Shown piece by piece: positions 8,693-57,800 of a stretch of DNA of 64,000 nt. How positions within the stretch are numbered: the first letter of the stretch is position 1; each line of letters starts with the position of its first letter. The notes under the pieces are model-generated. The model worked only from the letters and a program-made list of their open reading frames with translations. It was not told the origin of the DNA and ran no database searches. The stretch is taken from the sequence record MW749003.1; one strand, written 5' to 3'. Position numbers and translations under genes: made by a program.

Positions 8693-8704
8693 TACAGTAA
8701 TAAT

Positions 8705-8737
8705 GTATAGTGTGAGGATAATTGCCTCACACTATAC
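8705..8737 (+). terminator. Hairpin between sheath and tube genes
   Basis: GTATAGTGTGAGG/CCTCACACTATAC perfect 13-bp inverted repeat. Confidence 0.6.
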
Positions 8738-22782: not shown

Positions 22783-25700
22783 TTATTCCCTAGTTAGAGA
22801 ATAGATTGCTTGTATTGCTTCATTCCCAATTTGGCGGGAGTTTCGACCCATTTGATCTAACATATTTTTCTTTTCCCATATTAGTCGTTCTGCTTCTTCA
22901 TTAGCTTCTTTACTAAATACTCCACGTAGAGATACTGTATCACCCAAAATCTTCCAGTAGATTCGCTACATCTACTGCGTTCTCTTATGAACTGCTCTAT
23001 ATTACTATAGAGATGAGACTATATCTTCACAATATAATTGTGCCCTCCGTTTCCATTTAAAGAGGAATTATAACCTTATTACGGAATACCTCTACCGCTT
23101 GGCTGTACTCTACTCCCTTCCATCTAACTAGCGTTATCACAGCGATCTGTTAGAGTGGTTTCGATAGTCGTTGAACCTTCATCTTTAAATGAATTAAAGA
23201 CGCTTGGATGCTGATTGTCCATATAGGATTTTCCAGCAGTTAAAAGGGTTTTACTACGACAGTAGATTATTATCTTTTATAGGTAAATACTAAATTACCA
23301 CAATCCCATATTCTTTTAAATCTAGTTTTATCCATGATTTCAAATTCAGTACTATTATCACTATATAATTTTGGAAATTTCTTTTTGAGATTAGACTTTC
23401 TATAATTAAATCTATGGAATCGTTGAGTTTTTTCAACATTAACATACCAATAGTTGGGTTTACTAATATGACTTAATTCAAATTTATTATTGATATAAAC
23501 ATTACCATCTGACCAGCGTCTATCTGCATAGGTTATTAATTCTTTCCACTCATAATTTCTCTCGAAGTATTTGAGAAGTTTACTAAAAGCACCTATTACT
23601 CTATAGTCCATATCGGTAGCGAATCTTGATAGTTCAAAAATATTATCAACACTATTTCTACCTAGACTTTTTCTAAGTTTACTAAAAGTCATAACCGCTA
23701 CAAGTTCATCGCCATCTTCTTTTGGAAGCCATAAGCCTAATTTAATTGATGACAAATCTTTTCCCTGAATGTGATTTCTTTCTAGGAATTCATTTTTAAA
23801 ATTGTTATCAATTACTTCTACATAACAATTTCTAGCGTATATTTTAGTAGAATTATTTAATTTTAGTAAGTGTCTTATTTTTTCTTTTACTATGAGAGGT
23901 TTGTTAACCCATTCGTCTTCAAAAATTTGAATTAGTCTAATCCCTTTACTATTACATTTTTCTAATTTTTCTAAATGATAGTTTCTTTTCTTCCCCATTT
24001 GCTCTGAATGCCAATATAAACCATTAAATTCAAAAGCAATTTTTTTGGAAGGAATAAATATATCAATCTCTTTACCTTCAAGTAATTTCCTGTCATTACA
24101 TATGACTTTATCTACAACTAATCCTTTAATAAAAGAAGATAGTTCTTTTTCCATTTTTGATGAACTTTTAAATGCACAATATGGACATCTATTTCCATTA
24201 TTAAAGTTTTTAATTGTAACTTCATACTCCTTATTACAACTATGATGTAACAACCTAATCTTCGTTTTATTATTACGATATTCACCTAATAATGAATACT
24301 CATTATTTGTAACTAAGCTAATTTTTCTTTTAACCTCATCAGTAGTTAGCCTTCTTTTACCAGAACATTGAGGACATCTATTTTTCAAAGCATAATAAGG
24401 AGTAGTCTTCCATTCATAATTACAGTCATTACATCTGAAAAGTATTTTGGTATCGATATTGATATATTTCTCAAGACTTATAAGTCTTCCATTAGTCTTT
24501 TCTTTTAATTCCTTCTTAAACTCATCATTGCTTTTTAATCTTGATTTACCTTTATTAATATCAGCACACTGAGGACATCTACTACCATTATGAAATATAT
24601 CAGGTCTAACCTCATATATATTTCCACATAGTTCATGCCTTAATTTGATTTTAGTCTTATTGTTAATATATTCATTGGATAAAACTGTATAGGTATTGTT
24701 AGTTAGTAATTTAACTTCTTCTTTGAATTCATCCAGTGTCTTTTTGCGTGGCATACACTAATACCTCCAAATAATTAATAATTATTTGTTTATTTGACAC
24801 TGTATTCCCTTAAAAAGAAATAATATTGAATTTATCGTAGTCCCCGCCTAAAGCCTTTAAATAACCATTATAAGGAATTACTGTATCAACAAAAAGTTCA
24901 TCCTCTGCGGGATAGTCAGGGTATATAACAGGATAATCAGGTAAGTATCTATCTTCCAGCTTTTGAGGTCGTGTTTCTTTTGTTGAGAGAATTCTAATTT
25001 TACTTGGATAAATATTCTATAGTGATAGGTAAAGATTTGATATAATCTCCTCTTTTTCCCCCACTTCACACCCTACGTGCGACTTTCACCGCATAAGGCG
25101 TTCCATCAAAATATATTATTTTGACTATGACCCTTCGCTCCAATGGAGTTACCCATCTTCATAACTACTATGGTCTGCTGACTTTCTATATAAGAGTATC
25201 AACTATAATTTCTCTTATATAGAATCTCTGACGTTCCGTAAATGATAGTATAGCTATAACTTAGATGCCTTCTGCCCTATATAAACTTCTATTGTACCAC
25301 ACTTTACAATCAGGTCGTTCACCAGTACCGTATTACTAAACCCTGAATTTATATAGTATAAAAAGGTTCGTGTTCCTCATCATATTATAGCACCGCCCAC
25401 CCTATCTATTAGTATTATAGCATTACTAATATTCAGATGACTTCACCTAACTTCATACAAATATTTTATATAGTTTAAAATAGATGCATGTAGGAGTATT
25501 AGCGACAAGTCTTCAATGAAAATGGTCATATCTTTTACTTGTTCTCATTTACAGTTTAGATTATAAAATCTACTCCATTTCACATTAAATGCTTATAGGA
25601 GAACGTCACATACGATACTGCTCTATTGGATATCTTGTTACATATACATGTTTATCTTTGGTAATATCAACTGCCGCAATGAATAGAATATCAGTTAATG

Positions 25701-43937: not shown

Positions 43938-44011
43938 TGCCTTTCTTTTTTTTATTGAAAAAATTAAATATATATTATAAAAAAGAATAAAATTATTAAG
44001 GGGGAAGTATA

Positions 44012-44371
44012 ATGGAAATTGTTGTAAAAGCATTAACTGCTGTAGCTGAAGTAACAGAATTGGAAACTCTATATGAACATTTTAAGAATGGTTATACTCA
44101 TATTCTTGCGTCTAATTATCAAGATGACTTATGTTTAGTAGCTAGAGGTAATATTGAGGGAGATATAATTGAAGAATTAAAAAATGAATTGTCTGAAGAG
44201 GCATTTGAAGAATTAATGTGGATTAGTAAAGAATTTAATTTAGTAGATAAATTTAAAGATGAATTATATCATATTGAAGTATTATATAATGAAGATGATT
44301 ATCTGATTGCTAGAGTTAAAGATAATGATTATCTAAAAGATATTAAATTTCATGTGGAAAAAGGAGATTAA
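44012..44371 (+). CDS. Early acidic hypothetical protein
   Basis: Own early promoter motif and RBS. Confidence 0.75.
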   Translation: MEIVVKALTAVAEVTELETLYEHFKNGYTHILASNYQDDLCLVARGNIEGDIIEELKNELSEEAFEELMWISKEFNLVDKFKDELYHIEVLYNEDDYLIARVKDNDYLKDIKFHVEKGD

Positions 44372-44372
44372 T

Positions 44373-44753
44373 ATGTCTAAAGTACTAGGACTAGGGTTAG
44401 GTGATATTGTAAATTTAGCAAGTGAAAGAGATGGAGTAAAATATAAGTTAATTGAAAGTACTAAAGGTGATAAATGTTATGCATTATTGCGTTCAGATGT
44501 AGAGACAATATTTTTCTACTATGATGGAAATCATAAAGGAACACATCCAATTATGGCAGAAGATAAAAATGGAATAGACTTAACTAGTGATGAATATATG
44601 CCTTTTCTTATTTTTGCTGATGAATTATATGATGGAAGAATTTTAACTGAAGAACATACTGGATTAAATAGAATCATTACTAAAAAAGGTTTCTTGTCAG
44701 ATAGTGAAAAGGTACATTGGAAATCCAAAATGCATTATTTTGATGTTAACTAA
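44373..44753 (+). CDS. Hypothetical protein
   Basis: AAGGAG RBS before ATG 44373. Confidence 0.7.
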   Translation: MSKVLGLGLGDIVNLASERDGVKYKLIESTKGDKCYALLRSDVETIFFYYDGNHKGTHPIMAEDKNGIDLTSDEYMPFLIFADELYDGRILTEEHTGLNRIITKKGFLSDSEKVHWKSKMHYFDVN

Positions 44754-44819
44754 ATAGATATTAAAATTAGGAATTTAATTATGAAGATAATTTCATCATG
44801 AATATACATAAAAGGAGTA

Positions 44820-44978
44820 ATGAAAATGGATATCTATGAATCATTTTGTTTTTCACTATTAGGATTTGGTTTAGCAATTGCAGTTGTATGTGTAACATTA
44901 AGTGTTATTTTAGTATTAAATACCAATATTCTTATTAAAAGACAAATTGAAAAGTTGGAGGATAAAATAAATGACTAA
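44820..44978 (+). CDS. Small single-pass membrane protein (52 aa, not in the ORF track)
   Basis: AAGGAG RBS; hydrophobic segment FCFSLLGFGLAIAVVCVTLSVILVL. Confidence 0.6.
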   Translation: MKMDIYESFCFSLLGFGLAIAVVCVTLSVILVLNTNILIKRQIEKLEDKIND

Positions 44979-45435
44979 AATTATCTCAGGTTTTCCAGGA
45001 ATTGGTAAGAGCACTCTCTATAATAATACTGATTTAAAAGTTTTAGACTCTGATAGTAGTAATTTTTCATGGTCAAGTCCGGGAGTACGCAATAAGGATT
45101 TTCCACAAAATTATATTGATCATATTAAAGAAAATATGGGTAAAGTGGATATTATTCTTGTATCTTCACATGATGTCGTAAGAGAAGCGCTTAATGATAA
45201 TAATATTGATTATTATATTGTATATCCTGATATTAAATTAAAAGATGAATATCTCAAACGTTATAAAGAAAGAGGAAATGATGATAAGTTTTTATCTTTC
45301 ATAGAGAAAAATTGGGAATCTTTTATTAATGCAATTGAAGATGAAAATAACGCAACTTTGATTAAATTGCATTCTAATGAATACTTATCTGATATTATTA
45401 AGTTATTTAAAAATATTGAAGGGATGGGGTTGTGA
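44971..45435 (+). CDS. Small P-loop NTPase/kinase-like protein
   Basis: Walker A GFPGIGKS at the N-terminus. Confidence 0.75.
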   Translation: MTKIISGFPGIGKSTLYNNTDLKVLDSDSSNFSWSSPGVRNKDFPQNYIDHIKENMGKVDIILVSSHDVVREALNDNNIDYYIVYPDIKLKDEYLKRYKERGNDDKFLSFIEKNWESFINAIEDENNATLIKLHSNEYLSDIIKLFKNIEGMGL

Positions 45436-45436
45436 A

Positions 45437-45709
45437 ATGAAAAGAGACTATACAGTAACAATCAGACATTATACTAAAGGGAGTATTTCAGCATGTGACG
45501 TTGCAAATATAATAAAAGAAGAACGACATAATTTATTAGGTGGTAGTGATAGATATATTGATAGTGATGGAATGATTAAGGAAGAAGATTATCGTAGTAA
45601 TAGTGTTGATGTTATTCGAAAAGCAACTGATGAAGAAATTAAGTATTATGAAGCTTTATATGAAGCAGAAGAATATTTTAATAAATTACATTATAGTGAG
45701 GAGAAATAA
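45437..45709 (+). CDS. Hypothetical protein
   Basis: ATG follows the upstream stop codon; RBS present. Confidence 0.65.
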   Translation: MKRDYTVTIRHYTKGSISACDVANIIKEERHNLLGGSDRYIDSDGMIKEEDYRSNSVDVIRKATDEEIKYYEALYEAEEYFNKLHYSEEK

Positions 45710-45710
45710 A

Positions 45711-46802
45711 ATGAAGAAAAAAATAATTGACACACTAGAGATGTATGGCTATAAAAACATAAAATGGGATAAAAACAATGGATATACTTTTGATGGCAAT
45801 TATAGATTTGCTGAACTAGCACATGATATTAATAAAGGATTTTACATTAATACTACTTCTGGTCATATCAATATCAATGAGTCAGAAGAATATATTGAGC
45901 AACTTAAAAAAGTAGCACTTTTTGTAAAGACACTTAATGAAATAAATAAAATAGAATTAAATCCAAATTATTGTTTATTGATTGATTCACATTTTGATGA
46001 TCCACATGTAGCATTTTTATCAGGAGCAATATTATTTAAACCAAATGTTGGTGACATTAATAAAACATTCAAAGATGCATGGACAGTAATTGGTTCTTCA
46101 TTCGCTAGTCCTGAAGATCAATATGAAATATTACGAAATGGGAAGAATACAATTGATGACATGATGGAATTAGCTGGATGCATGGATGACAAAGATAAGA
46201 AATACTTTTTAGAATATCATCCAAATGGTTATAGAACATTAGATGAAATTTCTGATGAGGTTTTATTTGTAGATAGAGTTATCACTATATCTCATCAGCC
46301 ATATGATGAGCAAATTTTAAAAGATCGATTTTCATATAACGTTATAAATGGAAAAAATGCTGATGACTATGTAAGGGAAGTTAAAGTTCATCCTTCTAAT
46401 GATATGGAGGGAAAAAATATGACTTTAATTTTGTTATATGATGATATGAATGATGGTGCTGTTTATCATGCTTGGTTGGTTGAAACAAAGAACGAAATAT
46501 ATGGATATATTAATAGGCTGTTCCATCATTTTTTGGAAAGACATAAAAGTAGTTATTCACATGTTATTAATAGTATATCGAATATTAAATTTTCTGATGA
46601 AAAGATAAATGAAATAAAATCTATGTTCCTAGAGGGAATTCAAGACAAGATTATCAAAGAAGCTATTCATCAATTTAAAGATCGTTTAGAATTTAATGAA
46701 GATATCTACCAGAAGATTGATAATATATTTATTTATGACAGAGATGGTGGTTATTCAAATATGGCTGAAGTATTTACTAATGAAAGTAACAATAAACTAT
46801 GA
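45711..46802 (+). CDS. Hypothetical protein
   Basis: GAGGAG RBS before ATG 45711. Confidence 0.75.
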   Translation: MKKKIIDTLEMYGYKNIKWDKNNGYTFDGNYRFAELAHDINKGFYINTTSGHININESEEYIEQLKKVALFVKTLNEINKIELNPNYCLLIDSHFDDPHVAFLSGAILFKPNVGDINKTFKDAWTVIGSSFASPEDQYEILRNGKNTIDDMMELAGCMDDKDKKYFLEYHPNGYRTLDEISDEVLFVDRVITISHQPYDEQILKDRFSYNVINGKNADDYVREVKVHPSNDMEGKNMTLILLYDDMNDGAVYHAWLVETKNEIYGYINRLFHHFLERHKSSYSHVINSISNIKFSDEKINEIKSMFLEGIQDKIIKEAIHQFKDRLEFNEDIYQKIDNIFIYDRDGGYSNMAEVFTNESNNKL

Positions 46803-46869
46803 ATAAATATACAAAAAAAAGTAAATAATAAAGATAACACCTAGAGCTATTCATTTTCATATATGAATA

Positions 46870-47000
46870 ATGCTAGTAAAATGTCCTGATTGTGAAGGTA
46901 CAGGGTATGATACTTGGTTTGTTGGTGATAAAAAATACAAGATCATAATACTCCATGCATTAATTGCAATGGATATGGTAAAATTAAGGAGGAAAATAAA
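46870..47000 (+). pseudogene. Frameshifted DnaJ-type zinc-finger mini-gene
   Basis: CPDCEGTG in one frame and CINCNGYG in the -1 frame, joined at an A6 run (46930-46935). Confidence 0.5.
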
Positions 47001-47504
47001 ATGAGTAATCAGTGGACTAAAAAAATAGAAATAGATGTATTTGATAAGGAAAAATTTACCATTGGTAATCCCTATATGATTATTAATAATAATCCCTATA
47101 AGATTGGTAATGAAATTTATTTTGGTCTATTAAAGAAGATAACTAGTGATGAATTAGTATTTAAAGGTCTTGATGATGATATTTTTGTTAGTATTAATGA
47201 TATATTAGACGATAATATAAAAATTATTAATATGACAGCAATTAACGTATCACCACAATTATTTTCACCTGGACAAATTTTCAAAGTAAAGAGTGATATA
47301 GAACTAAATAAAGAAAAAATTCTTAATAATGGCTCATTAATAATAATTGATTCTATACTATTAGGTTCTAAAGGCAAAGACTATTATAATATTGTTATCA
47401 AGAGTAAAGGTCAAATAACAGAAGAAGTAAGCTTACCTAAAGATATTTTTATGGAAATCATTGATAAAAATTCAGAGAAAATAAAGATGATGCCTAGTGA
47501 ATGA
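47001..47504 (+). CDS. Hypothetical protein
   Basis: AAGGAGG RBS, 167 aa. Confidence 0.75.
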   Translation: MSNQWTKKIEIDVFDKEKFTIGNPYMIINNNPYKIGNEIYFGLLKKITSDELVFKGLDDDIFVSINDILDDNIKIINMTAINVSPQLFSPGQIFKVKSDIELNKEKILNNGSLIIIDSILLGSKGKDYYNIVIKSKGQITEEVSLPKDIFMEIIDKNSEKIKMMPSE

Positions 47505-47673
47505 CAGAATATGTAATCATACTGATTATTTAAAAATCAGTATGATTACTAAATATTAGTGTTAACATGATTAATATTGTGTTTTAAAATGTAAATTTAT
47601 TGTTTTAAAAATAAAGTTTTTCTATAACTAAAATAGAGATTTAGTAACAAATCATCAGAGGAGGAATGTGTAA

Positions 47674-47826
47674 TTGAAAGTAATGATTGGTTCAGCAATG
47701 ATAGTACTTGCAATCTTATTTCTCTTGTGGTTGGCAATCAGTCCATTATTCGAGAAAATAGGTAAAAGTACCAGAAAAGTAAAAAATAATATTTTTAAGG
47801 GTGATGAGAATGACAGTGAGAAATAA
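47674..47826 (+). CDS. Small membrane protein (50 aa) coupled to the SPFH gene
   Basis: GAGGAGG RBS, TTG start, hydrophobic segment MIGSAMIVLAILFLLWLAISPLF. Confidence 0.6.
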   Translation: MKVMIGSAMIVLAILFLLWLAISPLFEKIGKSTRKVKNNIFKGDENDSEK

Positions 47827-48616
47827 GATTATTGGTGGTATTGTTGCGGGTGTAGTATTAATTTTAGGTCTGATTATCTCTATCTTTATGGTTGAGAAAA
47901 TTCCAAACGGATATGTTGGTGTAGTTTATTCTCCTAATGGTGGAGTAAAAGAAACTACTCTTGACCAAGGTTGGCATTGGATTAAGCCTTTTGATAAGGT
48001 TACAGAATATCCAGTTCGTATGCAAACAGTAAATAACAAAGATATTAAAGTAGCAACATCTGATGGTAAAAACATTGAAATGGATATTGCTTATAACTAT
48101 GTTGTACAGCCAGATAAAGTGGTAGATGTATTCAATAAGTTTGGTTCAGTTAAAGTTGAACAAATTGAGAATTCATATCTTAAATCACGTTTATGGGATG
48201 CTTCTCGTAAAGTAATTTCTAAATATTCAGTAATTGATACTTATGGTCAAAAATCTTCAGAAGCGGCTAGTGAAATTCAAAAAACATTTGCTGAAGATAT
48301 GAAAAAATATGGTTTCATTATTGATGATCTTACTCTAGGTGTACCAAAACCAGATATGGCTACTCAAGATGCAATTGATGCTAGAGTTAAATCTTCTCAG
48401 GAATTGGAACGTTCTCAAACTGAGATCAAGATTGCTAAAGCAGATGCTGAGAGAAAGAAAATTGAAGCTCAAGGTATTGCTGATGCCAATGAGATTATTA
48501 AAAAATCCATGTCTAAAGAGATTATTATGAATAAATGGATTGAAAAGTGGGATGGTAAAATGCCAAAAGCAACTGGTAGTAACTCACTTCTTCAACTTCC
48601 TCTAGAAGATAAATAA
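47801..48616 (+). CDS. SPFH/band 7/prohibitin-domain membrane protein
   Basis: N-terminal transmembrane helix; IPNGYVGVVYS, V.TSDGKNI and AIDARV...AEA.R..I.A.G.A.AN motifs. Confidence 0.88.
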   Translation: MMRMTVRNKIIGGIVAGVVLILGLIISIFMVEKIPNGYVGVVYSPNGGVKETTLDQGWHWIKPFDKVTEYPVRMQTVNNKDIKVATSDGKNIEMDIAYNYVVQPDKVVDVFNKFGSVKVEQIENSYLKSRLWDASRKVISKYSVIDTYGQKSSEAASEIQKTFAEDMKKYGFIIDDLTLGVPKPDMATQDAIDARVKSSQELERSQTEIKIAKADAERKKIEAQGIADANEIIKKSMSKEIIMNKWIEKWDGKMPKATGSNSLLQLPLEDK

Positions 48617-48751
48617 CAGTAAAATAGGAATTAGAGTCTGAGTGACTCTAATTCCTATTATTAATTTACATAGGAGAATTGTAATATTTTATTAGATAAT
48701 TTTCCAGAGAAAATGTAATTGATCCAGATGTTTTAAATAAAGGGAGATAAT

Positions 48752-49048
48752 ATGAATCAAAAAATATTGCCTATAAAATTTATCCTTATGTCTATGTCTG
48801 AATGTCCATATTGTAATGCTAAAATAGTTAATCATAATTATCATCAATGTTATATAAATTACAATGATATTAAAGGTACTATCAATATAAGATCTAATAA
48901 TCAAGGAGAGAAAAATTTATGCTTAAACTATTCTCAAAGAAAAATAAACCTAAAATATGTAAAGAATGTGGTAGAGAATTTATTAGTGAGCATTGGGCAA
49001 TTTGTCAGAATTGTCTTAAGAAAAGAAATTGGTGGTCTTAAAAAATAA
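48752..49048 (+). CDS. Hypothetical protein (CPYC motif); the 3' third overlaps a second small ORF
   Basis: GGGAG RBS. The C-terminal part is probably read-through overlay of 48919-49041. Confidence 0.45.
   Translation: MNQKILPIKFILMSMSECPYCNAKIVNHNYHQCYINYNDIKGTINIRSNNQGEKNLCLNYSQRKINLKYVKNVVENLLVSIGQFVRIVLRKEIGGLKK
48919..49041 (+). CDS. 40-aa zinc-ribbon protein
   Basis: AAGGAGAG RBS; CKECG...CQNC. Confidence 0.55.
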   Translation: MLKLFSKKNKPKICKECGREFISEHWAICQNCLKKRNWWS

Positions 49049-49068
49049 GTATAAAAGGGGAAACTAAT

Positions 49069-49437
49069 ATGAAAACAACAATTACTGCTGAGGAATTAGT
49101 AGAAGCATATAAAAAGACTGGTATTAAACCCATTAATAAAGTATATGTAAATCCAGTAATAAATTGTGGTTGTGCATTATCAGTTCTATCTATCAGTAAT
49201 AGTGACGGTAAATTATCATTAAGTAAAATTAATGCTATTAGAGATGTTGAAGAATTAGAAGATATTTTTAGAAATAAAATTGGTCTTGATCCAAACTATA
49301 ATATCGAAGCTTTTATGGATGGATTTGATTGCATTATGAGTGGACAAATGGGTACTAGGGAATGGGATGAAGGATATAAATGTGCAAATGTTATTAAAGA
49401 AGAATTTTTAATTAATGATCTAAGTCGGGGGGTTTAG
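49069..49437 (+). CDS. Hypothetical protein
   Basis: 122-aa ORF with RBS. Confidence 0.7.
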   Translation: MKTTITAEELVEAYKKTGIKPINKVYVNPVINCGCALSVLSISNSDGKLSLSKINAIRDVEELEDIFRNKIGLDPNYNIEAFMDGFDCIMSGQMGTREWDEGYKCANVIKEEFLINDLSRGV

Positions 49438-49439
49438 TA

Positions 49440-49946
49440 ATGGAGAAAGAATCTATAAAAGATTTATTAAGATTAAGAGTTAGTAAATTTTCATTAGAAA
49501 ATGAATTTAAAAAAATAAATGAAGATGATATTGAGAATATTACTAATGAAATCATTAATAATGTTGATAGAACAATATTGACTAAACATGATTTTGATCA
49601 TTATTTAAGAAATAATGTAAATCCTCATATTATTGATGATATTATACTAAATGCTACTAAAGAATATTTAAATGGATACACAGTATCAGATCCTAAAGAA
49701 TATATATTTTTGTTAGTAATTTCTAATATGATTAAATATCATAGAGATTTTGACACATCTGGAATTGGATATTCTGAAGAACAGATTGAGAAGAACGAAA
49801 ATGAAGCTAGTTTATCTTCTTCTTTATCTATCATTGACATTAAAAAAATTTTTGGTGGAAAAGAAGATATTGAGAAACATATTACATTTTTAATGAGAAC
49901 TTATGGTGTAAGCAGAAATAGAATTAAGTACTTTTCTATTAACTAA
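49440..49946 (+). CDS. Hypothetical protein
   Basis: 168-aa ORF coupled to the upstream gene. Confidence 0.7.
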   Translation: MEKESIKDLLRLRVSKFSLENEFKKINEDDIENITNEIINNVDRTILTKHDFDHYLRNNVNPHIIDDIILNATKEYLNGYTVSDPKEYIFLLVISNMIKYHRDFDTSGIGYSEEQIEKNENEASLSSSLSIIDIKKIFGGKEDIEKHITFLMRTYGVSRNRIKYFSIN

Positions 49947-49983
49947 AAAGATCTTAGAGGATTAAAAGTAATTGGGGAATAAT

Positions 49984-50030
49984 AAAATAAAGGATAGAGA
50001 TAATTTAATCTCTATCCTTTATTTTTTTTT
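49984..50030. terminator. Bidirectional terminator
   Basis: AAGGATAGAGAT/ATCTCTATCCTT with A/T tails between convergent genes. Confidence 0.75.
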
Positions 50031-51759
50031 TTGTATACTTAAAAACTAAATTTCCACAATCCCAAATTCTATCATAACCAGCTTCTCTCATAATTTGAAT
50101 TTCTGTTTTATCATTACTATAAATTTCTGGAAATAATTCTTTTAATCTTTGTTTTCTATAGTTGTATCTATGTGAAAGACTCAATTTATTTTTATTAAAA
50201 TACCAATAATTTGGCTGAGAATTATGCATAAAGTGAAAGTTATTTTTATAATATACATTTCCTTCTGACCATCTTAAATCAGCATATGTTATGATGTTAT
50301 TCCAATCATAATTCTTTTTAAAATAACTGAATAATTTTCCAAAACTACCTATTACATTATAGTCTCTTTCTGTAGCAAATCTACTTAATTCATAGTCATA
50401 TTTATTCCCTTTTTGCCCTAAGCTAACTCTAGGTTTACAGAATGTCATTACTGCTACTAACTCATCACCCTCATTCCTTGGATACCATAGTCCCAGTTTA
50501 ATAGTAGAGTTATCAGATCCCTGAATATGATTTTTATCTAAAAATTCTCTTTTCACATTATTCTGAATTTCTTTTATATAACATTTTCTAGCATATATTT
50601 TTTCTCCATTATTTAAACCTAAAATATGTTTTATCTTTCCCTTTATAAGTTCTTTATTATCAATCCACTCATTCTCAAATAAATGAATTAATCTTATACC
50701 TTTTTCATTACATTTTTTCAATTTATTTAGATGGTAGTTTCTACCTTTTCCTTGAGATTCACCATGCCAATATAAACCATTATATTCAATTGCTATTTTC
50801 TTTGAAGGTATATAAATATCCAGTTCTAAACCTTCAAGTATTTTTCTGTCTGATAGAATTACATTAGTGCTATTGGGGAGAATTTGTTTAATATAATCAT
50901 ATAATTCAATCTCATCTTTTGAATTATGTTTCTTTAGTTGACATCTAGGACAATCTCTTTTAACTTTTTTACCTCTTGAATTACCATGTAAAATATCGAC
51001 CGGTCTAACCTTCCAAGAATAGCCACATGAATGCTCAATAACTATTGGAGTTTTATTATTAATATATCTACTCTTAATTGTATAATCATTACTATTAAAT
51101 ATTCTATAAAAATCTTCTTTAAAACCATTAGATCCTTTATTTTTTGGATTTTTATTACATATATTACACCTTTTTCTTTTTAGGAAATTAGTTGGTGTAA
51201 TAAAGAAATTATGAGAATCACTAGTATTGTGTCTCATCTCAATTTTATCTTGAGAGCTAATATATTCTCCTAATACAGTATATTCATCTCCTACTAAATC
51301 ATACACTTCTTTAATAAACATTTCAGTAGTCTTTGTCTTTTTCCTTTTTATTAGTTTCTTAGTACAATCAGGACATCTTGAACCCTTACTGAGAAAGTCA
51401 TTAGGTCTTTTTTTAAATTCCTTATTACAGATGTTATGTCTAAGTAATACTAGTTCAGAACTATTAATATATTCTCCTAATACAGTATATTCATCCCCTA
51501 CTAATTCATACACTTCTTTAATAAACATTTCAGTAGTCTTATTTTTTCTTTTAGATATTCTTTCTGATTTATGTAAAGGACATCTATTACCTGCATTTAA
51601 AAAGCCATTTGGTGTGACATAGTATTCATGACTGCATTTTTCATGTTTCATTTTTATTTTATTATTAGTTCCAGTATATTCTCCTAATACAGTATATTCA
51701 TCCCCTACTAATTCATACACTTCTTTAATAAACATTTCAGTAGTCTTCTTTTTAGGCAA
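50005..51759 (-). CDS. Free-standing homing-endonuclease-like protein: Zn-finger array + Vsr/EDxHD-like nuclease + Mom-like GNAT (likely TTG start 51759)
   Basis: Paralog of 23270-24754 (ELDIYIPSKKIAIEYNGLYWH; ELSRFAT...ITYADLRWSEGNVY). It lies outside any intron, after the beta gene stop. The start was chosen by the AAAGGA RBS and similarity to MPRKKT. Confidence 0.8.
   Translation of the reverse strand: MPKKKTTEMFIKEVYELVGDEYTVLGEYTGTNNKIKMKHEKCSHEYYVTPNGFLNAGNRCPLHKSERISKRKNKTTEMFIKEVYELVGDEYTVLGEYINSSELVLLRHNICNKEFKKRPNDFLSKGSRCPDCTKKLIKRKKTKTTEMFIKEVYDLVGDEYTVLGEYISSQDKIEMRHNTSDSHNFFITPTNFLKRKRCNICNKNPKNKGSNGFKEDFYRIFNSNDYTIKSRYINNKTPIVIEHSCGYSWKVRPVDILHGNSRGKKVKRDCPRCQLKKHNSKDEIELYDYIKQILPNSTNVILSDRKILEGLELDIYIPSKKIAIEYNGLYWHGESQGKGRNYHLNKLKKCNEKGIRLIHLFENEWIDNKELIKGKIKHILGLNNGEKIYARKCYIKEIQNNVKREFLDKNHIQGSDNSTIKLGLWYPRNEGDELVAVMTFCKPRVSLGQKGNKYDYELSRFATERDYNVIGSFGKLFSYFKKNYDWNNIITYADLRWSEGNVYYKNNFHFMHNSQPNYWYFNKNKLSLSHRYNYRKQRLKELFPEIYSNDKTEIQIMREAGYDRIWDCGNLVFKYTKKKIKDRD
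51261..51747. repeat. Three 73-bp near-identical direct repeats, 207-bp period (51261, 51468, 51675)
   Basis: Each encodes KTTEMFIKEVY(E/D)LVGDEYTVLGEY. Two copies are identical; the third differs at 2 positions. Confidence 0.9.
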
Positions 51760-51780
51760 AACAATCATCCTTTTATATAA

Positions 51781-51820
51781 ATTGGATTTCAACTATTATT
51801 TTGTTTAGTTGAAATCCAAT
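51781..51820 (-). promoter_or_regulatory. Late promoter AACA-N6-TA forming the loop of a perfect 15-bp inverted repeat
   Basis: Arms ATTGGATTTCAACTA and TAGTTGAAATCCAAT; the loop 51796-51805 is AACAAAATAA on the minus strand. Confidence 0.65.
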
Positions 51821-51838
51821 TTGTTTATCAATAAAAAA

Positions 51839-54800
51839 TTATTCTGAATATATTTTACCAATTTCTCGTTTAAGATGTACTAATGCTTTGTTTAAATATA
51901 GAGCATTATAAATATCAACGGTCATGCGTGAAACAATACTCAATGGACTCATAATAGCTTCAATATTCTCATCTGGATCATTCTCACTAAAAGGCTCTTG
52001 ATCTTTAGGAATAACATCAGATACAATTGTTTTAAGTGCTGTATAATACGTAATCTTATCTCCAATACCAAGTTCATCATCATACTCAATATAAATCTCA
52101 ATGAGTAGTCCGTCTACTTCAGTACCTTTAATTTTCTCACCTGATTGCTTTTGAATAGGTTTAAGATTAACAGAAGTCAGATCATTAGTAACAGACTTAA
52201 TCTTATCTTCTTTCTTCTTACTATCTTTAATATAGTTCTTCAGAATCTTTTGTACTGAAGGAGAAAACTCACTGATATCTTTATTGTAGTACATTACAAC
52301 ATCTACAATCTTACCAGTATATTTAGAACTTACTTTGTTCTTAGATAACTCATTAATAGTCTCATTAAAGTCATCTCCTAGTTTATCTAAGAGTTGGTTG
52401 AGTGATTTATCTTCAAAGGAGTTTTCAAAGATAATCAATGGATCACCAGTCTTAACCATATCGCCTTTCTTAACAATAAAGTCAATGTTTGAGTTAACTC
52501 CAAGAGCAAGTTCTTTCTTCATAGTAATTTTAGTAGATAGGTCTTGAGATAAGCTTTCTGTAATAATACTACTATCTTCATAAGTGTAATCTGCGCTTGC
52601 TAGTGCTACTTTACAAAGCTTCCCTGTAGTATACGTGATATCATCTTTCTTATCGCCAAGGAAGTAACTTGGATTCTTCGCTAGGATATCATCTTTTTTG
52701 AATTTCTCTCCTACTTTGATAATGAGTTCTTTACGATTAGCAATGTAAACAATTATCTTCCACCAAATTCGCTAGTTTTGGTGCGCCCTCTAACGGACTG
52801 CTCCATGTTACCATGAAGTTGAGACTATATCTTCAAAGTTCCCTGTTTCCCAGTATACATAAATAAAAGTATACCAGATTTCATCTCAGAAACCTGCCAC
52901 CAATCGCTTGTGGGGTACTCTACTCATCTTTATTAATAAGATTTTCGATAGTCGTTGAACGTTCTCTATTAGTTTAATAGAGCTTCGCTTCTGATTATCC
53001 TTTTAATAAGGACTTCCCAGAAATTAAAGGAATTTAACGTGAGCCTTTAAACCCACCATTACTATTCTTACTCATATGCTCGGAGAGATCAATGACGTCT
53101 TTCTTACCATCATTATAACGAACGACAGCTAGCTCATGTTCTTCATCTATGGACTCTAGAACTCCATCTTTTTTTGCTCTAAACACAAAGTCGTCACTTA
53201 GAATATAAGCAACAGTCTTCTCTACACCACTACCAAATAGAGGTTTAGATTGCTTTGTGGTAGGAATGATCGTTAACTTCCATTAGATTCGCTACGTCTA
53301 ATGCGTTCTCTTATGAACTGCTCTATATTTCTATAGAGACGAGACTATATCACTATCCTTAATAATTAAGGATAACTCCCATTTCCATTTAAGGGATTCT
53401 CACCCACTCCAAACACTTGAGCCGTACTCCTATTGCGGAATTTCACCGCTACTCACAATCCTAAGATTGCTTTCGGATAGTCGTTGAACTTTATTCAAAA
53501 GTTTTCTTTAAGTATTCTTCTAGATTACTTAACTGTGTATAATTGAATCTGAATAGTTTATAACCCTTTCTTTTACAATACTCATTTTTTAGATTATCAC
53601 GGAATTGTATATCCTCTAAGCCTTCTTCTCCACCAAAAAAATCAGATGGCTTAAAATGTTGCTTACCATCATATTCAACTAATATTTTAGTTCCGTCCTC
53701 ATCTTCAAAATAGAAATCAAATCGTAATCTTCTTCCTGTTTTTGGATTAACTAAGTCTGAAAATGATTTTTCAATTTCAAAGTAGATATTATTCTGGTTG
53801 AAATAATTAGTAATAATTTGAATCCCACTAGAATTTCTTCCAATTCCATTACTACAATGAGGACATCTGTACCCTAAAATAAAGTTATTTGGCTTTATCT
53901 TAAAAGTTTTTTCACATTTTCCATGATATAATGTAACATGTTTGTGAGCATGGGTATATTCATTTGTTAGAGAATATTCATTACCAACCAATTCATAAAG
54001 TTTTTCTTTAAATGTCTCTGTAGTTCTTTTTTTAGTTTTAGCACAATTTGGACAACGATAACCAGAAAGAAAATTTACAGGTAATACAGAATATTCATTA
54101 CCGCATTTGTTATGTCTCATCTTAACGTGAGTCATATTGTTTATATATTCAGAAGTAGGTTTATATTCATTACCGACCAATTCTTCAACTTTTTTTCTAA
54201 AATCAGAATCGGTTCTTTTTTTATTTTTAGCACAATTTGGACAACGATCTCCTCGTCTGATAAACTGATATGGTTGAACCTTATATTCATTACCACATTT
54301 ATTATGTCTAAATAAAATTTTAGTATGCTGTGCTAAAAATCTTCCTAATACCACATATTCATCACCAGTTAATTCTTTTACTTTCTTTACAACTTCCATA
54401 TGTTTTTTATTCAATAAACAAATTGGACATTTAGTTACTTTATTTTTCTTAAAGAAACTATCTGGTCTCATTTCAAATGTACTATCGCATACTTTATGAT
54501 AAAATATAGCATTTATAGTTGATGATATATATTCTCTAACTTCAAATTCATTATTATATACATCTTTTAATCTTCTAGAATAAACTTTACTTAACATATT
54601 ACACCCTCCGACAAACAGTTGTAATAATATGTTAAATTATTTAAAAACTATTTTGAATATTAGCTGCTGATTCTCCAATTCTATTAGTTTTCAAACCTTC
54701 ACGCTTATTATTTCTAATTACGTTGTGGTCTAATAGACTCTAAGGAATTTCCAGCAATTAGAGAGTTTATCTAATAGTATTACTACTATTAGGCACGAAT

Positions 54801-57800
54801 CATGCTTTTGTTGGGTACTCTGCATGCCTACTCGTGGAGGATCAGCATGCCTTACTGTAAAGGAGTTCAATAATTCTGCTGGACCATAGATATTTGTCGT
54901 GTTATTTTTTGTATTAGGATTGGTGTCTAAGAATCCTCGTGTGTTTTTAAATGCTGGATCAAAAGTTAACTGTCTAACCCATTATCTTCATATAGGTTCG
55001 CTACACCTATACCGTTCTCTTATGAACTGCTCCATGTTACCATGAAGATGAGACTATATCTTTATCTAGTCAAAAAAAAAGAAAGGAGATGACTAGATAT
55101 CTCCCATTTCCATTTAAGGGATTCTCACCCACTCCAATCGCTTGAGCCGTACTCCTATTGTGTGTTAACCACTAAAGGATAGTCGTTGAACGTTACTCTC
55201 GTTATAATTAAAAATAATTTATAAAATTATTATTTTATTTTTTCCATAATAGTAGCTCTCCTTTTTAACTTACTACTATTATAATATATTTAACGAGAGT
55301 CTTCGATACGGATTGTCCTATTATTAGGAGTTTCCCGTAGTTAGAGAGATTTTATCATTATATATCACTATATAAGGGGGCAGTTTAATTCACCCCAACT
55401 TTCATTATCTTCCACTAGATTCGCTACATCTAATGCGTTCTCTTATGAACTGCTCTATGTTTCCATAGAGATGAGACTATATCATCATCCTATTAGGATG
55501 CCTCCCATTTCCAACTCCAATCGCTTGAGTTGTACTCTACTCCCTTCCACTAACTAGCGTTATCACAACGATTTGTTAGAGTGGTTTCGATAGTCGTTGA
55601 ACCTTACTCTAATGAGTCTTGGATGCTGATTGTCCTTAAAGGATTTTCCAGCAGTTAAAGAGGTTTACTTATAATATTTCTATTATAAGGGACTATTATA
55701 AATCTTGTCTGGAAATTCAAGAATTATAATAATTCAATCCGAGTCGGGCGTTGACATTGCCATGATTCCACGCATACTAGGGTCATAAGCTCGAATATCA
55801 GTTGTATAAGCATCCGTTTTCCTTCATATAGGTTCGCTACACCTATACCGTTCCTTAGAACTGCTCTAAGTTTCCTTAGAGACGAGACTATATCATCACT
55901 TAAAAAGTGCCTCCCATTTCCAGCCTCAATTGCTTAGGCTGTACTCTACTCCCTTCCTACTAACTAGCGTTATCACAACGATCTGTTAAAGTGGTTTCGA
56001 TAGTCGTTGAACCTTTACCTTATTACAAATAATTTGTAACTTAGGTACTTGGTTGCTTATGATTACCCAATCCTTTAAATTTTTACCATACCTGAATTGT
56101 TATATTCAGCCATCTATTATGTTTCCATATAGATTTGGTATTAAAGGCTCTAAGGGTTTTCCAGCAGTTAAAGAGGTTTTAATTGGACTAAAACACTTTA
56201 ATCCAAGTTCCTTCCTGAAAGCCCCTTGTAAGTAGCCGCACCACCCTTTTCAATTTCCAAAGAAGGGTTAAGGACACTATATTCATCGACAGTAGGTGAA
56301 TTCATTAATGTCTTTAATAGAATATCCTGTGGAACAGACATCTTAATAGGATTACCAGCTTTCAGTGTATCCTTATACGTTTTAAATGAATCTGCCAAGA
56401 TTTTATATAGATAAGCATTTACTTGCTCAGTACCACGGATTCGATATGAATTCATATCATTCAGTGGACTATAGCTCATATCTTCCAATAAGGTATTCGC
56501 ATACAACAATATGTCATAGATATTCTCAGGTAATTCTAACTGTTTCAGCACATCTAATGTGATAGGATCAACCATTAGAGATAGAGTATTGTGAAGACCT
56601 TTACCCATATTTCTACTACCGAACATCTCATAGAAAGTCTCAATATAAGGATCTTTAGAGTTCATTTCTTCAAATGCATACTCTTCAGTAGCCATAGTAC
56701 TTAGACCACTTAATAATAGGGAATTTCTCAATAAAGAATTATTATAATATAGGTATCCATCTTTAAAACGGATCTTATCATAGTCATCATCAATTGTAAT
56801 TCTCTTATTTTTAGTATCAAAGCTATATTCAATATTATATCTTTCTAATAAATCTTCTAATCCTAATTCATATCCAAGAAGAACCACTAGAGGGATCATT
56901 CTATTATTAATACGAACTCGGTTATATGCTAGAGACTTAGAATTACTTAAAGAAGATAATTTTTTATAAGCTTCCTCACTAAGTGAAGTGACAACAACTT
57001 TAATAATGAGTTCTGAAAGACTCATATCAGTATTTTCTTGTTTCTTATTATTAATCAGATAAACTCTTTTACTTGAACGATTAAGAGCAATAACGTTTTC
57101 ATTATCTTTTGTATGACCGATTGGTAAGAATTGTTTATCATCAATATTAATCTTAGCAAGCTTAGCCATATTATCAAGATCACTTTTCAATAAATCTTCT
57201 ACTTCTTTTTGACTGAACATAAGTTTATATTCATCATTCTCTAAGCTTAGAAGGAAAGAAGAAATCTCATTATATTCAAGAGTTGTTTCATAACCCTCAT
57301 TAATTGTTAGAGCGTTACCTAGGCGATAATTAAACTTCTTACCTGATACCTTAAATTCATTTAAATCCATACCAAAGAGTTTCTTAAGTTTCTCAGTTTT
57401 ATGAGATAATTTAGAACCAAAGCGCATGACAAAAAACTTATTGTAGTTAGTAGTAATCTGAACTTCATCAGGTTTTGTTTTTACAATGGGCAAAGATAGA
57501 ATTTGCTTAAGAATTAATTTTTTACCACCATTAATATTCATAAACCTACCATCTCTGATAATAGGATAATCAAATTTAACAGTATGCTTTACATTACGAT
57601 CATCTTGGAAAGTAACAGTATAAGTTAATTTTTTTGATAAATCAGTAGATGTGTCTTCTGTTTTAATATCACTTACAAATAATTTAACATCGCTATCTCC
57701 ATTAAATGATGAAAGAACTGCAACTAAGTCTTTTTTCATCTGTTTTTCAAAGTAGCTCATATCAAAATCTTTGAGATTTGAATATCTAGTTTCTTCTTGA

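Follow-up and report, generated by a model that had tools for sequence, protein, structure and literature searches.

How phage genes come to retain ORF-less group I introns has long been asked, and we know of only two worked examples (MobE with nrdB, and F-CphI with psbA). The question is raised again by Bacillus phage Internexus, a giant phage of the AR9/PBS1 group, in which an endonuclease gene stands directly behind the virion RNA polymerase (RNAP) beta gene, itself interrupted by five introns. Does this enzyme mobilise itself, or a neighbouring ORF-less intron, into the beta gene of competing phages, and what protects its carrier? The first-pass annotation of the locus had proposed a trans-acting mobiliser whose target would be an intron-minus site in beta, with the intron I5 as the nearest candidate for both target and immunity device. 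We examined these proposals in a 64,000-nucleotide stretch of the Internexus genome (record MW749003.1), referred to below as the window, whose positions are used throughout.

The endonuclease cassette and its expression

The following features make up the locus:

49984..50025, no strand assigned: pre-existing terminator hairpin, common to the convergent gene clusters (z = -9.95)
50005..51759, minus strand: coding sequence of the free-standing Hef-like homing endonuclease, 584 aa, TTG start at 51759
50032..51837, no strand assigned: cassette of 1.8 kb (hairpin, late promoter and endonuclease gene), found in Internexus, AR9 and PBS1 and not in Goe21, from collinear BLAST chains and junction sequences
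51779..51822, minus strand: 17-bp hairpin directly 3' of the beta stop codon, with the late promoter within its loop and 3' arm; it lies inside the cassette missing in Goe21
51794..51805, minus strand: late (non-virion RNAP) promoter, AACA-N6-TA, identical to the mapped late start region of AR9 g188
51839..52749, minus strand: last exon (E6) of the virion RNAP beta gene (the gene for the N-terminal half, AR9 g189), joined to E5 in Goe21 and PBS1

The endonuclease gene sits between the beta stop codon (51839-51841) and the common terminator, i.e., between genes, and begins 79 nt from that stop codon (70 nt with the alternative ATG start at 51768), close to the 80 bp first read. Counted from the first in-frame TTG, the longest version of the ORF has 595 codons (50005..51792, minus strand). 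Its placement outside any intron, as initially annotated, was borne out on two sides: Rfam group I and group II models gave no match overlapping the ORF, and in Goe21 the terminator hairpin comes right after the beta stop codon, at a distance of 19 nt. Goe21 thus represents a clean empty site, lacking exactly 50032-51837. At its other end, the ORF terminates inside the terminator hairpin, past a poly-A run whose length varies; a difference of a single base there makes the Internexus C-terminus five residues longer than that of AR9.

The gene had also been credited with its own late promoter, which homology confirms. For g188, the AR9 ortholog, dRNA-seq placed a late transcription start at AR9 position 149101(-) (PMC5312081 Table S3), and the 50 nt upstream of it are the same in Internexus at every letter, AACA-N6-TA included, which would place the Internexus transcription start at 51794. 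Expression of AR9 g188 follows a late profile, with three successive tabulated values of 2.7, 99 and 400 (PMC5312081 supplements). The region 51760-51845 folds with -21.8 kcal/mol (z = -4.9), and the predicted outer helix in read-through RNA also pairs the ribosome-binding and start region of the endonuclease.

Both the gene and its promoter are already on record in sister phages: the enzyme is annotated in them (as "Hef-like homing endonuclease" in AR9), and the promoter was mapped in AR9. The orthologs AR9 g188 and PBS1 gp77 share 98% amino-acid identity with the Internexus protein, contain no stops or frameshifts, and have the same position behind beta, the same hairpin and the same late promoter. 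Synonymous and non-synonymous codon changes stand at 11:11 between Internexus and AR9 and at 10:3 between AR9 and PBS1, with no frame breaks. The gene is intact, and non-synonymous changes are under-represented.

A three-module enzyme and its paralogs

The protein was assigned to PHROG 559 (E 4e-167), and tblastn searches recovered matches annotated as Hef-like in phages of Campylobacter and Tenacibaculum as well as in AR9. At E <= 1e-10, we counted 2588 relatives. It consists of three modules:

50935..51759, minus strand: four tandem Zn-ribbon repeats (CapR/DUF4379 treble-clef) of ~65 aa each, aa 1-275, from Pfam CapR and DUF4379
50620..50922, minus strand: Vsr-like, EDxHD-type nuclease domain, aa ~280-380, from phmmer, Foldseek and invariant columns
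50020..50607, minus strand: C-terminal GNAT domain like that of phage Mu Mom, aa ~385-580, from Foldseek

Enzymes of this three-module design abound in metagenomes, where the relatives number in the thousands, and to our knowledge have never been characterised. The Cys pairs of the Zn-ribbons are conserved across a 53-sequence alignment, and the AF2 model (pLDDT 86.5) renders the array as repeating units of a helix and a beta-hairpin. We presume this array to be the DNA-binding module. Repeat 3, as read off the translation, is missing one conserved Cys.

The nuclease domain matched 3r3p (I-Bth0305I) in a phmmer search against PDB (E 1.7e-5), and Foldseek returned 1cw0 (Vsr), 1vsr and 3r3p with probability 1.00 each. 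Six of its residues (E283, D314, E325, H332, H343 and K346) do not vary across the family (53 sequences), and all are kept in Internexus. The E-D-x-H-D motif reads E283, D314, N327 (the x position, which varies) and H332, and the column of the last Asp holds Gly339. This position is Gly in Internexus and Asp in AR9 and PBS1; among the 53 relatives, D occurs 32 times, G 6 times, and N and S 5 times each.

Gly339 brings up the possibility of a stagnant or domesticated gene, one that has lost cleavage or taken on another role, e.g., in regulation, and is kept only through its linkage to an essential gene. Such a fate would fit the Gly in place of an Asp that pairs, in the alignment, with D222, an essential residue of I-Bth0305I, the Cys missing from repeat 3, and the 98% identity among three phages that are all carriers, for which recent homing need not be assumed. 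However, position 339 is variable in the family while none of the six invariant nuclease residues is missing from Internexus, non-synonymous changes are under-represented, the AR9 ortholog is actively transcribed late, and presence/absence polymorphism together with flanking mosaicism points to recent mobility. We therefore consider a stagnant gene very unlikely, and the Internexus enzyme is apparently a functional homing endonuclease beside an intron-rich essential gene.

For the C-terminal ~200 residues, the best Foldseek match was Mom (8bv8_A, E 1.5e-5, probability 1.00, TM (target) 0.52). A PDB sequence search with this domain gave no match, and the likeness to Mom comes from the fold search only. 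Within the domain, H411, R460, D494 and S498 are invariant, and R496 and Y503 nearly so. The reference residues of Mom are H58, R111, S124, D149, R151 and Y159 (PMC13219725); R460, D494 and R496 are spaced like the essential R111, D149 and R151, a correspondence of spacing only. The counterpart of Ser124 is ambiguous: it may be S472 or S498, and position 474 is Gly in Internexus.

The enzyme has paralogs at three further places, two of them within introns of the window:

53491..54597, minus strand: paralog encoded in intron 4, 368 aa, with Zn-ribbon repeats and nuclease and without the Mom-like domain
23270..24754, minus strand: paralog in an intron of the beta' gene, the closest in the window, 46-47% identical over the whole three-module architecture

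The earlier description of the enzyme as a paralog of an intron-encoded one therefore holds twice. BLASTP against the intron-4 ORF, whose insertion occurs in Internexus only, gave E 9e-35, with an alignment that spans the Zn-ribbon repeats and runs into the beginning of the nuclease; the ORF at 23270..24754 is contained in a group I intron that interrupts the virion RNAP beta' gene (AR9 g146). The remaining paralog is a second free-standing copy, 43-53% identical, which likewise stands behind the gene encoding the remaining half of beta and is also missing from Goe21; this second locus corresponds to AR9 g264/g265. In this comparison, the AR9 assembly (G001) was taken in place of Internexus's own. 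The gene for the other beta half is intron-less, and synonymous mosaic tracts are dense in its 3' half and adjoin the paralog: ~75 sites split AR9/PBS1 from Internexus/Goe21, and 13 Internexus-private sites fall in the last ~80 nt. All three full-length three-module copies (3/3) belong to virion RNAP loci: two follow such a gene directly, and the third occupies an intron within one. This fits recent evidence of jumbo phages using such enzymes on each other. The intron-free second copy of the arrangement serves as an internal control.

With a Mom-like domain and a nuclease in one chain, the protein could also be a restriction/modification-like weapon, in which the former marks adenines at the enzyme's own sites and the latter attacks unmodified DNA of a co-infecting phage (or of the host) at many sites, its place behind beta being incidental. 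The Mom fold is the best structural match, the residues spaced as Mom H58, R111, D149, R151 and Y159 are invariant or nearly so, and Iyer et al. predicted the same division of labour between nuclease and modification for Mom-nuclease fusions of jumbo phages (PMC7824862). It would also account for PBS1, which has the gene without I5, and for the intron-less second locus. Against it, a confinement of 3/3 full-length paralogs to virion RNAP genes is the behaviour of a site-specific homing enzyme rather than of general restriction, the namesake Hef is such a homing enzyme, and the counterpart of the catalytic Ser124 of Mom is ambiguous (G474 in Internexus, with S472 or S498 as alternatives). We judge this explanation unlikely.

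Intron I5 and polymorphism beside the cassette

Two features of the beta gene bear on the target of the enzyme:

52750..53050, minus strand: intron I5, group I, ORF-less, 301 nt (Rfam RF00028, 76 bits)
51868..51929, minus strand: cluster of synonymous polymorphisms (n = 13) in the last ~90 nt of beta, a candidate co-conversion tract or target region

I5 is inserted in the codons of the conserved NSNGGFY motif of beta, 909 nt from the beta stop codon, in good agreement with the distance of about 1 kb first noted. In an AR9 RNA run, a joint missing exactly 301 nt corresponds to its removal. Internexus, AR9, PBS1 and the metagenome strains X1 and X4 carry the endonuclease gene, which Goe21 and BpSp lack; I5 is absent from PBS1 and Goe21. 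The gene and I5 accordingly occur together in Internexus, AR9, X1 and X4, PBS1 has the gene alone, and Goe21 has neither. Two independent records of PBS1 agree on an intact endonuclease gene without I5. BpSp has a homolog of I5 at the same site and no free-standing gene behind beta. The AR9, PBS1, Internexus and Goe21 phages thus form a natural test set, in the tractable host B. subtilis, of genomes with both elements, the endonuclease only, or neither. With beta exon 6 and the endonuclease as queries, searches of GTDB genomes, IMG/VR and JGI metagenome contigs returned only AR9 and distant matches (26-39% identity). Takahashivirus phages do occur in samples from fermented food and wetlands. 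In metatranscriptome X5, the Goe21-type junction lacking I5 was found at high depth and pieces of the endonuclease and I5 at ~10-fold lower depth; these depths suggest that X5 is a mixture of strains, though contig depths are no proof of it.

This distribution bears directly on collaborative homing, the arrangement of F-CphI and the psbA intron, in which the enzyme would cut intron-less beta at the I5 site, I5 would protect its carrier by interrupting that site, and the pair would spread as a two-part unit. The proximity of the two elements (909 nt) favours it, as do their pairing in four genomes or strains, their joint absence from Goe21, and the fact that among close relatives I5 is always accompanied by the gene. 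The insertion site of I5 also falls in a conserved motif and is a polymorphism hot-spot: of about 20 exon nt, 7 are variable. Across the site, PBS1 differs from Goe21 at 4/17 bp, including a non-synonymous Ala-to-Ser change, which is how a resistant target variant should look; since PBS1 and Goe21 differ there, the I5 site is still a possible target.

Yet PBS1 lives with an intact enzyme, and I5 seems dispensable there; BpSp has the I5 homolog without a free-standing gene behind beta, and the free-standing paralog of the second locus stands without a partner intron. Taken together, these three cases suggest that self-immunity needs no intron. Clusters of silent changes also flank the beta' intron, which has its own enzyme, and so are not specific to the free-standing enzyme. 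The co-occurrence, moreover, comes from effectively 5-6 related genomes and is not statistically meaningful. By eye, we also sought a TTNG-N6-CNAA site, like that of I-Bth0305I, and a motif common to the homing site of the beta' intron and the I5 site, and found only a weak GGNGGN...TAT likeness (8/17), not above chance in AT-rich DNA. Collaborative homing is, in our estimate, rather unlikely, and the proposed role of I5 as both target and shield fared poorly, also given that the Mom-like domain could offer another route to self-protection. The predicted co-occurrence with introns was seen in part, in the four paired genomes or strains and in Goe21, but not in PBS1 and BpSp.

Closer to the cassette, the beta gene has 17 variable sites in ~100 nt, all synonymous, compared with about 1 per 30-50 nt elsewhere. 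The 13-site cluster breaks down into 4 sites private to Goe21 (51917-51929) and 9 that split Internexus/AR9 from PBS1/Goe21 (51868-51908). Strain X1, which has both gene and I5, is identical to Internexus across 51868-51929 and thus represents the same haplotype. Goe21 was the only close genome without the cassette to compare, and the sites called private to such genomes have a sample of n = 1 behind them. PBS1 is mixed here: it matches Goe21 over the 40 nt adjoining the cassette and the cassette-bearing type over the following 13 nt, a pattern not to be had from one simple contiguous conversion tract. Synonymous mosaicism is strong along the whole beta gene, with its five introns and other endonuclease genes, and the polymorphism signatures flanking the cassette could stem from other nucleases at beta.

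At the distal end, the divergence between Internexus and AR9 shifts sharply at the exact border of the cassette. Window-wide, an identity of 96-99.9% between the two phages is the norm, the exception being a divergent cluster at 44-50 kb that ends at the cassette. We also considered a recent exchange of the endonuclease-beta block between Internexus and AR9 and rejected it, as the identity profile showed the similarity of this block to be the window-wide norm.

From presence/absence polymorphism and flanking mosaicism, the cassette is probably mobile. The notion of a trans-acting mobiliser hence survives in part: the enzyme is free-standing, apparently functional and polymorphic, with an empty site and clustered changes on its flank, but I5 as its target or immunity device does not follow.

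Proposed homing and comparison with known systems

Our preferred reading, which we hold to have an even chance of being correct, is that of a mobile, free-standing Hef-like cassette that spreads by intronless homing directed at the 3' region of beta and occasionally takes I5 along (trans homing). The enzyme would be produced late in infection from its own promoter for the non-virion RNAP. When a cassette-less relative co-infects, it would cut or nick the rival DNA in the 3' part of beta or its immediate flank, and repair off the cassette-bearing genome would copy the cassette in. Adjoining beta sequence would be co-converted over variable lengths, and I5, 0.9 kb away, may ride along, as the nrdB intron does with T4 MobE. 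We infer here the cleavage, its position and the direction of conversion. PBS1-like recombinants, with the cassette and without I5, are a prediction of trans homing. Self-protection would be independent of I5, through silent differences in the target or possibly through modification of the site by the Mom-like domain. In the phage DNA, uracil replaces thymine, as is established for AR9/PBS1 (PMC5449584), and target recognition can not be extrapolated from enzymes that act on thymine-containing DNA.

An extension of this reading is a self-marking homing element, in which the Mom-like domain, guided by the Zn-ribbons, would modify an adenine within the enzyme's own recognition site in beta. Carriers would then be immune without an intron or silent mutations, unmodified rivals would be cut, and the cassette, sometimes with I5, would be copied in. 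It would account for PBS1 and for the intron-less second locus and, if true, would give homing endonucleases their first case of built-in immunity through modification; we regard it as improbable.

Intronless homing of the cassette has its closest namesake in Hef of the T4-like phage U5, which is free-standing, lies between genes and cuts the neighbouring essential nrdB (Sandegren et al. 2005, reviewed in PMC2988022). The Internexus enzyme is likewise free-standing and of Vsr-like lineage, a kinship at the family level that comes from annotation and from the grouping in the I-Bth0305I paper; its host gene is RNAP beta instead of nrdB. Within the AR9/PBS1 group, AR9 and PBS1 differ from Internexus in having Asp where it has Gly339, and PBS1 also in lacking I5.

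For the passenger role of I5, the nearest precedent is T4 MobE, which mobilises the nrdB intron (with its defunct I-TevIII) in trans by co-conversion, and for which MobE-only recombinants occur (PMC2790892). In both systems, a free-standing endonuclease stands beside an intron-containing essential gene, and the intron is non-autonomous. However, MobE, a nickase of the HNH type, has no promoter to itself, whereas the Internexus enzyme is of the Vsr type and has its own late promoter and a Mom-like domain. F-CphI of cyanophage S-PM2, which has an Endo VII catalytic motif and cuts at the insertion site of the psbA intron (PMC6083498, PMC2988022), resembles the Internexus enzyme in being encoded immediately downstream of a gene with an ORF-less group I intron. 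It cuts at the intron site, whereas in the Internexus group, PBS1 shows the enzyme coexisting with a beta gene that lacks the intron.

The EDxHD prototype, I-Bth0305I (3r3p), shares the Vsr-like catalytic domain, its D196, N208 and H213 corresponding to D314, N327 and H332. It differs in being intron-encoded and in having NUMOD/HTH modules N-terminal to the nuclease, with neither a Zn-ribbon array nor a Mom-like domain, and its essential D222 aligns with a column that is variable in the Internexus enzyme family. Finally, the intron endonuclease of PhiPA3 targets the virion RNAP gene of PhiKZ in interference competition (Birkholz et al. 2024, reviewed in PMC12908238). It is a homing endonuclease of a jumbo phage at a virion RNAP subunit gene, as we propose for Internexus; the PhiPA3 enzyme is intron-encoded and experimentally tested, while the Internexus enzyme is free-standing and its action on beta is predicted.

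The endonuclease gene behind beta and its promoter

The window corresponds to the first 64 kb of the Bacillus phage vB_BspM_Internexus record (MW749003.1), with unchanged coordinates; this jumbo phage belongs to Takahashivirus, the genus of AR9 and PBS1. The gene INTERNEXUS_65 is annotated in the record as a "putative HNH endonuclease", and its AR9 ortholog g188, which is 96% identical, as a "Hef-like homing endonuclease". The following features define its surroundings:

50005..51792, minus strand: endonuclease ORF, 595 codons (ORF reading)
51839-51841, same strand as the endonuclease ORF: stop codon at the end of beta, the six-exon gene for the N-terminal half of virion RNAP beta (homolog of AR9 g189)
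51839-52749, minus strand: last exon of beta (comparison with relatives)
52750-53050, minus strand: I5, an ORF-less intron of 301 nt (comparison with relatives)
53491-54597, minus strand: endonuclease ORF in I4 (comparison with relatives)

Beyond I4, the same comparison places I3, an 11-nt exon, I2 and I1, and the exact 301-nt splice of I5 was seen in an AR9 RNA run. The annotated start of the endonuclease is a TTG at 51759 with a well-spaced AAAGGA upstream; an ATG is also present at 51768. The first-pass annotation had described a paralog of the I4-encoded enzyme, located outside any intron about 80 bp from the beta stop codon and equipped with its own late promoter, and this description held. 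The two genes share a strand, and with the beta stop codon at 51839-51841 the distance to the annotated TTG of the endonuclease is 79 nt. Rfam group I models matched four of the beta introns and nothing over the ORF, and the two enzymes are related (E 9e-35), having Zn-ribbon repeats and the start of the nuclease in common. In AR9, dRNA-seq placed a late primary 5' end of g188 at 149101(-) (PMC5312081), and the 50 nt given for its upstream region recur without mismatch at Internexus 51795-51844, including the motif AACA-N6-TA. Judging from this sequence identity, the mapped AR9 end supports a late promoter that is more than a consensus match. The tabulated g188 transcript levels rise over three successive values (2.7, 99 and 400) in parallel with beta (PMC5312081). 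At its other end (50005-50035), the ORF continues via a poly-A tract into a terminator hairpin; this tract differs by one base in AR9, leaving the g188 C-terminus five residues shorter.

An intact nuclease with a predicted Mom-like domain

Pfam returned only weak CapR/DUF4379 Zn-ribbon matches, while PHROG 559 matched the protein from end to end (E 4e-167) and a sequence search of the PDB recovered the catalytic domain of I-Bth0305I (E 1.7e-5), the prototype of the Vsr-like "EDxHD" family in which Hef-type phage enzymes have been placed (PMC3239194). A word search found more than 2500 relatives, many of them full-length, 45-50% identical and encoded on large phage-like contigs. The nuclease residues E283, D314, E325, H332, H343 and K346 are invariant in a 53-sequence alignment and all present in Internexus. 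Position 339, the counterpart of the essential D222 of I-Bth0305I in the alignment, is Asp in AR9 and PBS1 and Gly in Internexus; we do not take this as inactivation because the column varies across the family (53 sequences). The reading frame is unbroken in all three phages that carry the gene (Internexus, AR9 and PBS1). Synonymous and non-synonymous codon differences number 11 and 11 between Internexus and AR9, and 10 and 3 between AR9 and PBS1, a deficit of non-synonymous changes. That the gene is dead, as Gly339 might imply, is very unlikely.

An AlphaFold model (pLDDT 86.5) predicts four helix-plus-hairpin Zn-ribbon units, a nuclease and, at the C-terminus, a domain some 200 residues long. 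The modeled middle domain matches Vsr and I-Bth0305I in structure, and the top structural match of the predicted C-terminal domain is Mom of phage Mu (8bv8, E 1.5e-5), a GNAT-fold DNA adenine-modifying enzyme. The invariant C-terminal residues are spaced like H58, R111, D149, R151 and Y159, which are important for Mom function, with an ambiguous equivalent of the catalytic Ser. A Mom-nuclease fusion was previously reported in jumbo phages, with modification predicted to provide self-protection and the nuclease to attack others (PMC7824862). Such a modification-protected weapon is a serious alternative explanation of how self-cleavage is avoided, if a rather improbable one.

A putatively mobile cassette and a second, intron-free locus

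Comparison of junctions revealed that the close relative Goe21 lacks exactly 50032-51837: its beta stop is followed by 19 nt and then by the terminator hairpin that contains the end of the Internexus ORF. This empty site therefore defines a cassette composed of the gene, its late promoter and a 17-bp hairpin directly behind the beta stop; the promoter occupies the loop and 3' arm of this hairpin. In read-through beta RNA the hairpin is extended, and the ribosome-binding and start region is base-paired in it (z = -4.9); the late transcript, whose 5' end lies within the hairpin, cannot form it. By analogy, this arrangement may resemble the control of T4 endonuclease genes.

Across four genomes, the last ~100 nt of beta contain 17 variable sites, all synonymous; elsewhere, variable sites occur about once every 30-50 nt. 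Four of the 17 (51917-51929) are private to the cassette-less Goe21, and nine (51868-51908) divide Internexus/AR9 from PBS1/Goe21. On the distal side, identity between Internexus and AR9 drops to 78-92%, with indels, in a single strongly divergent cluster at 44-50 kb (44000-49947), against 96-99.9% in the rest of the window. The boundary of this cluster coincides exactly with the distal end of the cassette. Within the cluster, 47500-49434 is identical in AR9 and PBS1, which start to differ ~500 nt before the cluster ends.

A paralog search in AR9 uncovered a further free-standing Hef-like gene, g265 (INTERNEXUS_147), outside the window, at a locus that serves as a control:

Internexus record 124366-127416 (locus L020, 1680-4730): second locus
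AR9 locus L018, 2274-5277: g264/g265

g265 lies directly behind g264, whose product is the C-terminal half of the same virion RNAP beta subunit, and just ahead of convergent genes. None of the phages compared has an intron in g264, and the endonuclease is again missing from Goe21. Dense mosaic tracts in the 3' half of g264, made up mostly of third-position changes, extend up to the endonuclease: ~75 differences at nt 642-1165 divide AR9/PBS1 from Internexus/Goe21, and the last ~80 nt hold 13 Internexus-private differences. The endonuclease alleles of Internexus and AR9 are only 74% identical here. From its sequence pattern, this locus has the appearance of repeated homing with co-conversion, no intron being involved. 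The three full-length paralogs (g188, g265 and the copy in the beta' intron) all reside at virion RNAP genes.

Association with I5 and models of homing

Co-occurrence of the endonuclease with I5, a check called for beforehand, was tallied across genomes.

Endonuclease and I5 in Internexus and its relatives
Internexus: endonuclease present; I5 present
AR9: endonuclease present; I5 present
PBS1 (two independent records): endonuclease present; I5 absent
Goe21: endonuclease absent; I5 absent
BpSp (more distant): endonuclease absent; at the I5 site, a homologous intron carrying a 1.3-kb insertion with opposite-strand ORFs

The BpSp intron (locus L006, 5913-7481) carries gp246 (PHROG 22902) and gp247 on the opposite strand; gp247 had no matches, and Rfam did not detect this intron. 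Among public sequencing runs, both elements occur in a fermented-food metagenome strain (X1), whose beta 3' end is of the Internexus/AR9 haplotype, and in a wetland strain (X4). Metatranscriptome X5, probably a mixture of strains, yielded a Goe21-type junction without I5 and, at low depth, pieces of the endonuclease and I5. Close relatives occur in fermented-food metagenomes and metatranscriptomes and a wetland metagenome (runs X1, X2, X5 and X7-X9), and in at least one of these samples intron-bearing strains appear to coexist with intron-less ones. The genome and read tallies thus indicate that the two elements mostly travel together and are separable in both directions. The proposed association is borne out by Internexus, AR9, X1, X4 and Goe21, but not by PBS1 or BpSp.

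Beta also varies elsewhere. Goe21 lacks I1, I2 and I5. Three distinct insertion sites fall inside 11 nt of the gene (window 55392-55402; locus L003 ~8690-8710): I2 precedes AAAGTTGGGGT, I3 follows AAAGTTGGGGT, and an ORF-bearing intron of Goe21 lies 6 nt upstream of the I3 site.

In strict collaborative homing, I5 would be both target and shield. The I5 site does lie in conserved codons (NSNGGFY) and is a polymorphism hot-spot, with three silent changes beside it in intron-bearing alleles; within 17 bp spanning it, PBS1 and Goe21 differ at four positions, one of which changes Ala to Ser in PBS1, and a resistant target variant in an I5-less carrier would have this look. However, similar clusters flank the beta' intron, which has its own enzyme, and other endonuclease genes in beta differ between these phages: a Vsr-type ORF in I4 of Internexus only (window 53501-54742 against locus L002 9128-9193), the HNH-AP2 ORF g190, with its own early promoter, in I3 of AR9 and PBS1 only (window 55227 against L002 9677-10316), and the ORF of the Goe21 intron. 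We consider this model unlikely, and less likely than trans homing. At beta' itself, the 12 nt preceding the insertion site differ by four silent changes between intron-bearing alleles and the intron-less Goe21 gene (GGCGGGGACTACGAT against GGAGGAGATTATGAT; window 24834-25018 / 22948 against locus L016 2243-2252).

Homing plus trans homing is the most likely mechanism for the endonuclease and I5. The free-standing enzyme would act on alleles without the cassette, at a target in the 3' portion of beta or next to it, repair would copy the cassette into the cut allele, and I5 would be co-converted when the tract extends 0.9 kb. PBS1-like genomes would be recombinants of the kind expected when conversion ends before reaching I5. 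What the data show is an intact gene, its family, its promoter and the comparative patterns; cleavage, the site of cleavage and the direction of conversion belong to the proposed model.

For AR9, the gene, the name of its family and the late promoter were already public, and trans and collaborative homing are established concepts. Assembled here are a natural genotype series, an empty site, flanking polymorphism clusters, evidence that I5 is dispensable and an intron-free twin locus. The endonuclease is thereby a clearly delimited candidate that can be tested, and its kind is already known, so that it comes as no surprise. Trans homing was demonstrated for T4 MobE with the nrdB intron (PMC2790892), whereas for I5 we propose it by analogy.
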